From the NCBI GenBank assembly GCA_965153285.1, contig OZ229111.1: a stretch of DNA of 64,000 bases; one strand, written 5' to 3'. Under the pieces are notes generated by a model, which had not been told where the DNA came from, made no database searches, and saw only the letters and a program-made list of their open reading frames with translations. Position numbers and translations under genes: made by a program. Origin of the DNA: Podarcis tiliguerta (taxonomy: Eukaryota). Shown here piece after piece: positions 29,466 to 36,500 of this stretch; the stretch's first letter is position 1, and each line of letters opens with the position of its first letter.

Positions 29466-29602
29466 GTACCATTGGGCAGACTGGGCTGGGGGGGTGCTGT
29501 TACTGGTCTGGAGAACAGGAGAGGCTGGGGCATATTCTTAGGCCACAATACCCCTGGGGGTCTAGTTGCCCTACTGAATCCAGAGTGGGACTGTCTTTTC
29601 AG

Positions 29603-29699
29603 AGCCGAATCCGGAGAATGTGGAATGATACTGTAAGGAAGCAAACTGAGTCCAGCTTTATGGCAGGTGATCTCAACAGCACTCCCACCCTTAATCGAG
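29603..29699 (+). CDS. ADGRL1: ADGRL1 exon, C-tail
   Basis: cag|AGCCGA...CGAG|gtgagc, 97 nt. Encodes [32 protein letters not shown]. Confidence 0.96.
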
Positions 29700-30081
29700 G
29701 TGAGCAGTCACTCTGTATTTTCCATCACTTCCTGCAACTCCTTTGTGAGCCAGAGGGCAGGCCTGTACCCACACACCTGACTAAGAGCTTCCTGCCCCAC
29801 CCTTAAAGCTGCTCCCCGGCCCCACTCCCTACAACCAAGCAGATGAAAGAGATCCCTACCAAACACCACTCCGTATCAGTTTCTCCCAGAGAGTCACCTT
29901 TTCTCCTCGGCTATCTCTGGTGGCCTCCAATGTAGTTCTGCTCACATGGCCATGACTCCCCCCCCCCCCCGAGCCAAGCTACTCTGTCTCCTCTCCATCT
30001 CCAGCCTTTCCACCAACCCCAGATGCGGAGGCACTTTCTACCTCCATGGTGCTAACACCTTTGCCTATACTACTTTTGCAG

Positions 30082-30210
30082 GCACAATGGGGAACCACCT
30101 GCTGACCAACCCCGTGCTGCAGACACGGGGCGGGACCAGTCCTTACAACACACTCATTGCTGAGTCCGTGGGCTTCAACCCTGCCTCACCACCTGTCTTC
30201 AACTCCCCAG
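30082..30210 (+). CDS. ADGRL1: ADGRL1 exon, C-tail
   Basis: cag|GCACAA...CCAG|gtaagg, 129 nt, phase 1-1. Encodes [43 protein letters not shown]. Confidence 0.96.
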
Positions 30211-30474
30211 GTAAGGGCATCATCACCCAGGATAACATACTTTCCCCTCTAGATTGATGCCCCAGACTGAATTAGGGTTCCATTTGCACACACAAATACA
30301 GAGCTCCACATTTTCCTTATTGAAAATGAGGGGTGGGGTAGGTAGAAAGCAGAAAAGATACCTGAGATTTCTGCTTTTGAGTCTGGTGAAAAAGTAATTC
30401 CTCAAGCCTGGGCGCTGGGAGGAATGGGTCAGGAGAAGTGGCAGTGGAGGAGCTCCTCCTTTATTCTCCCGGTG

Positions 30475-32481: not shown

Positions 32482-33260
32482 AGCACCCCCTGAACAACAG
32501 CCGAGACGCCTGTGGCATGGACACCCTCCCGCTCAATGGCAACTTCAATAACAGCTACTCCCTCCGCAGTGGCGACTTCCCGACCGATGGCACCAAGATG
32601 GCCGACTGCCGACGCAACCTGAGTGACGCCGCCGCCTTTGAAAAAATGATCATCTCCGAGTTGGTGCATAACAACTTGAGAGGGGGAGGCAGTGGCGTGG
32701 TCAAGGGGGGCGGGGGTTCTGCCGAGACCTCCAACCCCCCTGGGCCCCCTCCCCCTCCTAACGTAGTTGCAGGGGGAGGGGGTACCAACAATGAGGATGA
32801 CGCCATTGTGCCTGACGCCCCTTCCTTGACCCATGAGGAGAACATGGAAATTGAACTCATGTATAAGGCCTTAGAGGAGCCGCTCTTGCTTCAGAGGGCA
32901 CAGTCCATCCTCTACCAGAGTGACCTGGAGGAATCGGAGAGCTGCACAGCTGACCTGACAGAGGGGGGCGATGGCCAAGCCCCTTCCCCCAACAGGGACT
33001 CTTTATACACCAGTATGACCAACCTGAGGGACTCCCCATACCCGGACAGCAGCCCTGAGGCAGTTGGGGAAGTGCTTCCTCATGCCCAAGCCATCAATGA
33101 AATCTACTATACCAATCGGCCAGCCTTGGTGCCGCGCAACCAGCTCCAGGCCTACTACCAAGTCCGGAGACCCAGCAATGATGGCTACTTGGTCCCAGGA
33201 AGCTTAGAAAACCCAGCAGTGGAGGGAGATGGCCAAATGCAGCTGGTGACCAGTCTCTGA
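32482..33260 (+). CDS. ADGRL1: ADGRL1 last coding exon, latrophilin C-terminal region ending in the PDZ-binding motif VTSL
   Basis: cag|AGCACC...; encodes [32 protein letters not shown]...[19 protein letters not shown]...[22 protein letters not shown]...GQMQLVTSL*, with TGA at 33258-33260. Confidence 0.98.
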
Positions 33261-33563
33261 GGGGCTGAGAAGGGACTGAGGGACCATAACACCCCCCAAA
33301 AAACCCCCCAATGCGGCACTGTTGCCGTGACCTGAACATTTTAATTTTTTCCTGGAAGAAAGGGTGGGGAAGAAGAGAATGGCACAGGGCTGGGGAATGA
33401 ATGGAGGAGAGAAGGTGGAAGAAAGAGCTGAGTGAGGCAGAGGGCTTCTCCGAGGAGAAGGGAGGGGCAGCCATTTTGTCCGTCTTTCCTTCCATCCAAT
33501 TAGATTTCCAGACAGAAAGTGGACGTGGCCTATCTGGTTATGTCCGTTTTCCTTCTCCAGGCA

Positions 33564-33569
33564 AATAAA
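33564..33569 (+). terminator. Candidate proximal polyadenylation signal
   Basis: AATAAA about 300 nt after the stop codon. No clear downstream GU-rich element. Confidence 0.25.
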
Positions 33570-36500
33570 TGCAGTGGAGGAAAGAGAGCTGAATCTAGGC
33601 AAAAGGATCAGACTTATTTTGACAATACCTTCTAGACAATTGGGGGGGGGGTGAACCAAGAAATTAGGGTGGGAAAGTTAAAAAGCTGACATAATAATAT
33701 TTTTTTTTAATGTTACGAAAATCAAAGCCATGAGGGTTCCACATGCAGAGACTGGGGCACCTGGGGAAATGCCCTGCCCTGCGCCCTGGCTCAGAGCCTG
33801 CGCCCCACCCCTCGCCTCCCATAGCTTAAGAGTATGAGGGACAAACAGGGCCATGTGGCACTCGGCCTAGTCGGGGTTTAGATTCAACCGTTGCCAAAAA
33901 AGAGAGACAAAAGACAGAGAAAGGTATGAGGGTGGGGGGAGAGGAAGGAGCTGTTCAGGTAACGCTATGCTGAGAACCTGCCTTCCAGTATTTGTTGGCT
34001 GTCACAGTTTATCAACAGGGTTTGCATCAAGTTCTTCAGCTCTTTCCGATTGGCAGGAAAGCTTTGCTTTGATTCTTTCCTCTCTCTCTTTTTTATTTTT
34101 TTAAATTAAAGCCCACATAGGAATGTTTGAAATGCACCATTGCTTCTGGGGAAGGAGGAAGTAGCACTGAGGTGTGGCTGTCCTTAGATTTTTTTTTTCA
34201 TTTGTATGGCCACACATGGTGGCCTTTCCCCCTCCTAGTTGCTTTAGGGCCACCGAGCCTGACGTAAAATTGCACAATAAGTAAGAGATGATGAGGGGTG
34301 GGGTGGTGGTAGCGGAGGGGGCATTTCTTCCCGTTTCACTCAGTTCCACCAGTCGCCCCCACGGCCTGCTAAGTTCCAGCTCCAGACATTTAGAAAGTGA
34401 TGCAAGACTGCTCTCACCTTCCTTCTGTTTCATTCCTGCCCACGAAGACGCAAACGTCAGGAGTATCCTGCAATGCAAATATGGCTGCCGTCAGAACACA
34501 TTTGGGACTACATGGGAGAAAGTAGGAGTGTTGAACTCTCCCCCGCCCCCCAGACTGGATGGATTGTCCTTCAGAAAAATGACAAACAGAACAAACAAAC
34601 AAAAACAGCAACAAAAACACTAACCCAGACTGCACTTTTTTTCCACCCAAAGGAAAAAGAAATAGCAAATCTCCCTCTTCAAGCACAACTCCGACTTTTC
34701 TCACCAACTCTCGGCCTGGGAGAGTTGGGGAAGCAACCAGTCTCACCTAGAGGCACCATATTTCCGGGGCGGGCGGCGGGCGGGGTCCAAATGGGTTGGG
34801 AAGCGGGGGATGTGATACCAATTGAAATGCTGTAAATATGAAAACCTAAAAACAAATCAGAGAATTGATTTACTCACTTGAAAAAAGGAAAAACAAACCA
34901 AGGAACTTTTCTGTCTGGGTTTTAAATATATCTATATCTATATAATATATATAGATATATGGTACTCAGCTCTGCTCTGGCCCCATGTGTGGTATGGGAG
35001 CATGGAAGGGAAAATGGGGGGCAAAAATCCCTTCTTTGACAAAGACAACTGGGGGAAACCCGCCGAGAGCAGATTTTTACAATCAAAAAAGAGGGAAAAA
35101 AACATTTTGGCACAATTTTTATGTAATATATAACATATACTGCGTCATTTCTGTGACCTTGAAGCATTTCCCCTTTCCTGCCGGATGAGGTACCTTTTTC
35201 ATACATCTCCACATGAAGTTGGTTATTTTCTCATTAACTGCCACTTTGGAATTGTGGGTGGGGGAAAAAACACTTTTACTGCAAGACCCAAAGATGCTGT
35301 AATGCTGTAGGTTACAGAAAAATCCTTCGCTTTTAAGAATTTTAAGAGGGGACAGAGTAGTTTCATTTCATCATCATCATCATTTTTAAGCAGCCACGTC
35401 TTACCTATTTAGAAATTTCCAGGCTAGATGTCACGTTATATCAAAAAGGGAAATGGTGTGTGGTTTTGCCACTTGGAGCCTTGAAATGTTTGTTCTCTTG
35501 CTTTTATTTTATTTTAATTATTATTTTTGCATCTTTTGTCCTCTCCCAGTTAATGGAATTGCTAAGAGACTTGGTCAAAAGCAGAAGGCGAGGGTTTGGC
35601 ATTCTTAGAAGTGTACCTTCCTTGGAATAGGCAAGGGCTTCCTTTCTCTGTGCCATATTGTGGCAGGAAAGAAGAGCCATCGTCACTCCTTGCTGCCTGC
35701 TTACATCTCTTGCCCCAGTGCCACAAGCTAAGACCCAAGGAGCCAATATTAAATTGCCCTGTACAGTGGCAGCACAATCAATCAAGTCCTCCTTTTCCAT
35801 CAGGAGACAGCACTAACCCTGATGACAGTGAGCTTTCTTCTTTCTTTCAGTTTCTTGCTCCGTGTTCGCCTGCGTTATCATTGTGCTAGGCCTGTTCATA
35901 TGGTCGCTTCCCCTAGCAACTGCATGTTTGCAGCATCCAAGAATGCCCCGTGATCATGTTTGGTAAAGAGAAGCTTGTCGTGTGCCCATATTGATATTTC
36001 CTGCAAAGAACCCAGTTAAAGGCTGGCCACAAAGAAAGAGAAGAAGGTAACCCTAAAACCCAATACAGCTGTAGCTCACAAAGCTTGATCTGACATCATT
36101 TAGATCTAGGGACATGGCATATAATAGGCACAGACTTTTTCACCTAGAGTCATCTCCCCCTCCACCCAACCTAATGTAATTATACTTGATTCAGAGATAG
36201 GGGCTAATGGTTTTCAGAAGCATTTTGTTTTATATCCGAGTCATACTTTCAAAGGGCACAGGGAATTGGGTTGTGGGGCTTTTGACGCCCTTGTTGCTGT
36301 TTCCACAGGTTTGGGTTGTAGTCTTCATTAGGATCTTATTGCATGAAAGTTGGAAGGTTAGTGTGAGAATCCTGACAAATCCATGTTGGCTCAAACTCCT
36401 TCCTGCCGCTCTTTCGATCTTGGTCCAGAACCAACTTGCTCACTCTCTTAGATGGACACCTTACCCTTGTGAGGACAAGGCCCCACTCCCATTTACCTGA

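Follow-up and report, generated by a model that had tools for sequence, protein, structure and literature searches.

The 3' end of ADGRL1 (latrophilin-1) in the lizard Podarcis tiliguerta probably holds a single real switch for the C-terminal PDZ-binding motif, namely a second 5' splice site lying 31 nt past an 18-nt microexon. In the same reading, the short intron behind the exon that follows TM7 is an out-of-frame form of the intron at splice site B, and two further open stretches, one in the last intron and one in the 3' region, are products of chance. The preliminary description had joined these four features, here called (b), (a), (c) and (d), respectively, into a hidden multi-way switch of the cytoplasmic tail. 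All four were located where it had placed them when the frames were recomputed, and a frame check confirmed that all are phase-compatible with the tail. The multi-way switch itself was nonetheless overstated, as C-terminal splicing of Lphn1 is already in the literature and only one of the four alternatives is supported.

Exon map of the ADGRL1 3' end

The exon map and frames place the 3' end of ADGRL1 on the + strand of the window, i.e., the whole 64-kb stretch of P. tiliguerta DNA that was analyzed. The last coding exon (32482–33260) matches PF02354, the Latrophilin C-terminal region, with E = 1.1e-111 in a Pfam search, and its canonical translation terminates in QLVTSL, followed by the stop, so that the tail carries a C-terminal PDZ-binding motif. 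All 258 residues of this exon are identical in ADGRL1 of Podarcis muralis and P. raffonei, while ADGRL2 and ADGRL3 relatives reach only about 35–54% identity, which assigns the gene to ADGRL1 rather than to either paralogue. Upstream, the tail exon right after TM7 (VHREFSKC...YYTGTQ, 29337–29465, phase 0 end) has a translation identical to that of Podarcis and Lacerta ADGRL1 tails. Comparison with the ADGRL1 proteins of relatives likewise defined a constitutive tail exon (SRIRRMW...TLNR, 29603–29699) and a 129-nt tail exon (GTMGNHLL...VFNSP, 30082–30210, phase 1 end). The microexon GSFRES (30729–30746), with its proximal donor CCA/GTACGT, is conserved in jawed vertebrates, its counterparts being GSYREP in mammals, GTFRDP in teleosts and GTYRET in sharks. 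Repeats of the candidate regions were not found within the 64-kb window.

Two true in-frame cassettes, absent from the preliminary description, were also seen in relatives. The 129-nt exon is skipped in frame (TLNR/EHPLNN) in isoforms of Varanus (P0304/P0330), Gopherus (P0287) and frogs (P0229–P0233), and the microexon is left out of P. raffonei X5 and Pogona X4/X8, of snake and alligator isoforms, and of mammalian RNA contigs.

The isoform comparison has some limits that should be considered when referring to the results below. The search started from a full-length frog isoform (P0220), restricted to its tail, and the cluster members of its matches were then listed; for the two reptile clusters, these were 15 of 208 and 15 of 71 members. 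Human contigs and the large primate cluster (P0268) lay outside the comparison. When only the last exon was searched, squamates in the matches and their clusters gave genomic open reading frames and no spliced forms, and a search of representatives gave few full-length proteins. Exons were searched singly rather than as a joined spliced model, with split codons resolved by phase.

The distal donor after the microexon

The second donor (GCA/GTAATG, GT at 30778–30779) ends a 31-nt extension of the microexon (30747–30777) that is open, encodes STSLLSSSISQ and is not a multiple of 3 in length. Joining this distal donor (30777/30778) to the last exon reads the latter in the +1 frame, where a stop at 32549–32551 follows after 22 codons and the PDZ motif is lost. 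The product thus predicted is, residue for residue, the end of latrophilin-1 isoform X3 of the snake Thamnophis sirtalis (XP_013929811.1, P0350), which uses the same distal donor, so that for (b) the splice site is conserved in another reptile. The 11-residue extension is also identical at 10 of 11 positions in the X2 isoforms of the salamanders Pleurodeles (P0379) and Lissotriton (P0380) and at 9 of 11 in that of Ambystoma (P0381). These three isoforms, too, have a frameshifted last exon, although the shifted frame runs for 30 codons, as compared to 22 in Thamnophis and in the P. tiliguerta prediction. All four of these isoforms are RefSeq models predicted automatically in other species, and conservation was judged from protein models. 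With an identical snake isoform and three salamander isoforms sharing the extension, the sequences support (b) as a PDZ-removing switch of a genuine kind, with deep conservation in ADGRL1, and the earlier proposal of (b) as a PDZ-less alternative tail was thus supported.

Splice-site scores contributed little to this assignment. The matrices used were approximate and had no discriminating power: the distal donor of (b) scored poorly (top 36% of all GT) and below the donor of (c). We therefore relied on chance densities and on conservation, with the support for (b) taken from conservation. On such a simple matrix, the accepted proximal donor of the microexon is likewise low.

We propose that the conserved microexon, with its two competing 5' splice sites, would act as a PDZ on/off switch. 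With the proximal donor (30746/30747), the frame would be kept and the complete tail made, with the PDZ-binding motif VTSL at its end. The distal donor would instead add 31 nt, shift the last exon to the +1 frame and remove all 258 last-exon residues of the PF02354 region, PDZ motif included, such that the mRNA would encode a short-tail 7TM receptor. As the stop sits in the last exon, this mRNA should escape nonsense-mediated decay. We infer the use of (b) in this lizard, its escape from decay and its effects on signalling from the sequence.

It is improbable, in our judgment, that none of the four features is used here. In that case, splicing would be confined to the canonical junctions and the in-frame cassettes, the 31 nt would be conserved as an intronic enhancer of splicing, and the short-tail models of snake and salamanders would be rare or spurious transcripts. 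Regulatory conservation is common beside neuronal microexons, the short-tail models are automated predictions and the distal donor is weak on the matrix, all of which would fit such a view. Against it, four genomes, each annotated separately, independently gave this isoform, and the GT is preserved together with the open frame and the 31-nt length. The putatively homologous event was, moreover, measured at 20–25% of mouse Lphn3 transcripts (PMC10830413).

The splice-site-B intron and the open stretches

Candidate (a) is a 137-nt GT..AG intron (29466–29602) that, as had been described, is stop-free, with frames 0 and 2 both open. This is mildly unusual, as dinucleotide shuffles leave frame 0 open in 12% of cases and at least two frames in 2%. 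Retention of the intron shifts the frame and leads to a TAA stop at 29634–29636, 10 codons later. The intron lies at the YYTGTQ/SRIRRMW junction, the very position of a 45-aa in-frame insert in rodents (P0250) and of a 48-aa in-frame insert in P. raffonei isoform X1 (P0368). Splice site B is the 45-aa insert of rodent Lphn1 (Sugita 1998, Ovando-Zambrano 2019; review PMC6629964), and the rodent insert starts with VP and ends with Q, as expected of a retained GT..AG intron. By junction and by insert ends, (a) is the orthologue of this rodent retained intron. Although (a) is similar in length to the 135-nt rodent form, its 137 nt cannot be divided by 3, which precludes a stop-free, in-frame insert, and the insert sequences are unrelated except at their ends. 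The P. raffonei X1 insert follows frame 0 of the window over residues 1–10 and frame 2 from there on, which implies a 7-nt indel, placed near the G-run at about 29490. Within one genus, the splice-site-B intron is thus in frame in P. raffonei (144 nt) and out of frame in P. tiliguerta (137 nt).

The mRNA retaining (a) is likely subject to decay or nuclear retention. Nonsense-mediated decay is likely as the stop precedes three or four further junctions (three if the microexon is not included), and the earlier view of (a) as a dedicated short-tail isoform is thus not supported. We also considered whether retention might be a regulated switch in its own right, which would either reduce the output of ADGRL1 through decay or nuclear detention or else give the receptor a replacement tail of 55 residues. 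The intron is short, with a weak donor and acceptor, P. raffonei and rodents have annotated forms that retain it, and two of its frames are open. However, frame status varies within Podarcis, and the insert peptides of lizard and rodent agree only at the splice-site ends, which indicates that the coding outcome of (a) is not under constraint. We therefore regard regulated retention as an unlikely account, if less so than a complete lack of use of the four features.

Candidate (c) is a 146-nt stretch (31121–31266) within the intron preceding the last exon, flanked by AG and GT and open in phase 1, after which the last exon stops after 3 codons. When sites were rated by the same approximate matrices, open cassettes as good as this one and no shorter than 140 nt numbered 1.5 per kb on the + strand and 1.6 per kb on the - strand, with three found within this 1.7-kb intron. 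Candidate (d) lies 1.2 kb into the 3' region (34448–34623), where 57 codons stay open in phase 1 behind an AG at 34446–34447, up to a stop at 34621–34623. Acceptors of similar quality that lead into 57 or more open codons were counted at 0.63 per kb on the + strand and 0.45 per kb on the - strand, with two in the 4 kb after the stop of the last coding exon. Neither peptide shares a 7-mer with any of the 400 fetched proteins, nor did either match a Pfam family.

As a cassette exon, (c) was rejected since its density equals that of the antisense strand and no fetched isoform among the matches listed carries its peptide; it is most likely not an exon. By its position downstream of the main last exon, (d) resembles exon 32 of the alternative last exons E31/E32 of Lphn3. 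Unlike that exon, it shows neither conservation, nor an annotated isoform, nor an excess over chance, its density being the same on both strands and no fetched isoform among the matches listed containing it. It was thus rejected as an alternative last exon of the E32 type and is most likely due to chance. For both, the absence from isoforms should be read against the listed members of the two reptile clusters. The proposal that (c) and (d) provide alternative tails was accordingly not borne out. More generally, open AG..GT stretches of this kind in introns and 3' UTRs arise about 0.5–1.5 times per kb by chance here, which should be considered when such stretches are met.

That all four features are used, giving a multi-way switch that makes several PDZ-less receptors, is consequently very improbable. 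All four are phase-compatible, transcript catalogues contain many 3' end exons for mouse and human ADGRL1, and Varanus isoform X7 provides an example of a lineage-specific alternative end. Yet (c) and (d) stand at chance density on both strands and are missing from the fetched isoforms, while (a) is out of frame, with its stop upstream of several junctions. The alternative end of Varanus X7, for its part, has no counterpart in the window (tblastn; best E = 0.32, none significant).

Relation to other latrophilins and significance

The short tails of ADGRL2 and ADGRL3 probably arise as in (b), from the homologous exon read in the shifted frame. As described by Wang et al. 2024 (PMC10830413), the mouse Lphn3 (Adgrl3) exon 30a/30b pair is a small pre-last exon that an alternative splice site gives two lengths. 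The longer, 30b, puts exon 31 out of frame and so deletes the PDZ motif, just as (b) is predicted to do. The choice between the two alters G-protein coupling there, and Lphn3 tail variants set both this coupling and the joining of SHANK/PSD-95 scaffolds. It should be noted that (b) is likened to this pair by position and predicted effect, that it belongs to the paralogue ADGRL1 and to a lizard, and that the text of the paper fits the microexon as the putative positional counterpart of Lphn3 exon 30. The same paper has all three latrophilins spliced at sites corresponding to Lphn3 E31/E32, and C-terminal variability of mouse Lphn1 was listed by Knierim et al. 2019. The statement that ADGRL1 is spliced only at sites A and B is thus outdated. 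Our result is incremental: Lphn3 provides a published precedent for the mechanism, mouse Lphn1 is reported to be spliced at its C-terminus, and RefSeq already contains the isoform for other species.

The preliminary description had further suggested that tail switching is ancestral to the latrophilins and retained in squamate ADGRL1. Here, (b) fits, being found from snake to salamander and paralleled by Lphn3 exon 30b, whereas (c) and (d) lend no support and (a) is a probable decay target. We are evenly divided on a broader reading, in which the 31-nt extension is an ancient dual-use element that predates the amphibian–amniote split in ADGRL1 and is homologous to Lphn3 exon 30b. If this is true, the PDZ-less tail made by frameshift would be older than the latrophilin gene duplications. 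As a side case, the coding use of the splice-site-B intron, in frame in one Podarcis species and out of frame in another, may be evolving now. The junction 30777^32482 offers a precise target to be quantified in reptile brain. As far as the predicted proteins go, the persistence of this ADGRL1 frameshift across salamanders, lizards and snakes suggests that a receptor lacking the PDZ motif may be functional rather than noise.

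Tail exons of ADGRL1 and the distal donor

Translation of the window places the cytoplasmic tail of ADGRL1 on the plus strand at 29337-33260, with upstream ADGRL1 exons at 12951-28400. The tail exons, all on this strand, are found at 29337-29465, 29603-29699, 30082-30210 (129 nt) and 30729-30746 (an 18-nt microexon encoding GSFRES), followed by the last coding exon at 32482-33260, with the C-terminal end QLVTSL. This last exon matches the Pfam family PF02354 (Latrophilin cytoplasmic C-terminal region, E = 1.1e-111), and its 258 residues are all identical in Podarcis muralis and P. 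raffonei, with 257 identical in Lacerta and 256 in Zootoca, which places the genome in Podarcis or a very near relative among the lacertids.

The preliminary description had proposed four alternatives to this tail, together forming a multi-way switch of the PDZ-binding motif VTSL. On checking the window, the positions of all four were mechanically correct and the observation is confirmed. The interpretation as a whole is partly supported: a distal donor stands, a retained intron is a known site and out of frame, and an internal cassette and a downstream frame are most likely chance.

The distal donor is the GT at 30778-30779, 31 nt beyond the microexon. It is frame-compatible as described, in that splicing from it reads the last exon in the +1 frame up to a stop at 32549-32551. 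The evidence from relatives consists of annotated protein isoforms. A frog full-length ADGRL1 (P0220), found via its protein cluster, was used as the query and scored over its tail; reptile and amphibian cluster members were then listed and their tails read, including 15 members each of the reptile clusters of 208 and 71. The C-terminal end of latrophilin-1 isoform X3 of the snake Thamnophis sirtalis (P0350) equals, residue for residue, the distal-donor product predicted from the window, consisting in order of the microexon, an 11-residue extension (STSLLSSSISQ) and 22 shifted codons. The X2 isoforms of the salamanders Pleurodeles waltl, Lissotriton helveticus and Ambystoma mexicanum (P0379-P0381) carry this extension with one or two substitutions, together with a shifted reading of their own last exons. 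In these isoforms, the otherwise intronic 31-nt block and its GT are kept from amphibians to squamates, which argues strongly that the alternative donor is functional; we infer its use in Podarcis tiliguerta.

Cassette exons and the retained intron at splice site B

The relatives also display real splicing that was absent from the preliminary description. The microexon, which is kept throughout the jawed vertebrates (as GSYREP in mammals, as GTFRDP in teleosts and as GTYRET in sharks), is an in-frame cassette, being skipped (NSP joined to EHPLNN) in P. raffonei X5, Pogona X4 and X8, Varanus X8, snakes, alligator and mammalian RNA-derived contigs. The 129-nt exon is likewise skipped in frame (TLNR joined to EHPLNN) in Varanus, Gopherus and frog isoforms, and the PDZ motif is retained in every skipped form of either exon. 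Separately, a partial chimpanzee model (Pan troglodytes ADGRL1 isoform 8, P0098) lengthens the microexon upstream in frame via an earlier acceptor, so that in at least one mammal model neither end of this small exon is fixed. Varanus komodoensis isoform X7 (P0345) bears a 29-residue alternative end straight after VFNSP, with no significant counterpart anywhere in the window (tblastn, best E = 0.32), and this end is probably a lineage-specific terminal exon.

The intron at 29466-29602 is indeed 137 nt long and stop-free in frames 0 and 2; in dinucleotide shuffles, frame 0 was open in 12% and at least two frames in 2%. As 137 is not a multiple of three, translation of the retained form ends at TAA 29634-29636, ten codons inside the following exon. 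This stop precedes the next donor by 63 nt, with further junctions downstream of it. Stops in such positions lead to nonsense-mediated decay, and by this usual rule retention in the window genome would trigger it.

In the rodent Grammomys, isoform X3 (P0250) has a 45-residue insert precisely between YYTGTQ and SRIRRMW, starting with VP and ending with Q as expected of a retained GT..AG intron. This is the splice-site-B insert known from mouse Lphn1 (review PMC6629964), reported to affect cAMP signalling (Ovando-Zambrano et al. 2019, as cited by Wang et al. 2024, PMC10830413). An insert of 48 residues occupies this junction in P. raffonei isoform X1 (P0368), with residues 1-10 matching window frame 0 and the remainder frame 2. 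This implies a raffonei intron of 144 nt that keeps the frame, against an intron in the window that lacks 7 of these nt and breaks it. The lizard and rodent peptides are unrelated save for their splice-site ends, which means that what the intron encodes has not been conserved. The implied 7-nt indel lies near a G-run at 29485-29500 and toggles the retained intron between the two frames.

Open frames in the last intron and beyond the stop

The cassette at 31121-31266 is flanked by AG and GT and open in phase 1, after which the last exon is read for three codons before a stop. The downstream candidate is an AG at 34446-34447 followed by 57 open codons. Both are mechanically correct as described, but most likely arose by chance. 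When scored with approximate matrices, whose values count in relative terms alone, cassettes of this quality or better that are open in phase 1 over 140 nt or more have a density of 1.5 per kb on the plus strand and 1.6 per kb antisense, three of them in the same 1.7-kb intron. For acceptors as good as the downstream one and followed by 57 or more open codons, the densities are 0.63 per kb (plus) and 0.45 per kb (minus), with two within 4 kb after the stop. In this region the matrices do not tell genuine sites from spurious ones: low scores fall both to the donor accepted for the microexon and to the distal one. Neither peptide shares so much as a 7-mer with any of the 400 proteins retrieved, and neither matches Pfam.

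Poly(A)-signal-like hexamers (AATAAA or ATTAAA) are found 3' of the stop at 33564, 34105 and 35748. With the first only about 300 nt downstream of the stop, the downstream frame may lie past a proximal poly(A) site. In P0133, which derives from a public assembly contig and clusters with Phrynosoma, W replaces the stop after VTSL, through a sequencing error or else a TGA-to-TGG variant, and 111 residues follow, the start of which resembles the window 3' UTR read in frame (33258-33600). The resemblance shows conservation of the proximal 3' UTR across lizards.

Tail switching among the latrophilins

The preliminary picture of ADGRL1, with splice sites A and B alone, is outdated (Wang et al. 2024; Knierim et al. 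2019; 2024 catalogue). Mouse Lphn1 is listed with a variable C terminus and 19 exons at the 3' end (Knierim et al. 2019), and human ADGRL1 with nine 3' end exons (2024 catalogue). Wang et al. 2024 (PMC10830413) state that every latrophilin undergoes splicing at the counterparts of E9 and E31/E32. For LPHN2, tails of 34-366 residues are reported (LPHN2 preprint).

For ADGRL1, we propose that one microexon would be followed by two competing donors. The proximal donor would give the full tail with VTSL, and the distal donor would cause a frameshift and a stop within the last exon, leaving a tail that lacks the PDZ motif and the portion of PF02354 encoded by that exon. With its stop in the last exon, the distal-donor mRNA should be stable. 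The scheme agrees with Lphn3, for which the preliminary account was accurate: as described by Wang et al. 2024 (PMC10830413), exon 30 is either 30a or 30b, and 30b frameshifts exon 31 and alters G-protein coupling. We tentatively equate the ADGRL1 microexon with Lphn3 exon 30, by position and effect. The distal donor belongs to an already known type of event, with Lphn3 exon 30b as its latrophilin precedent.
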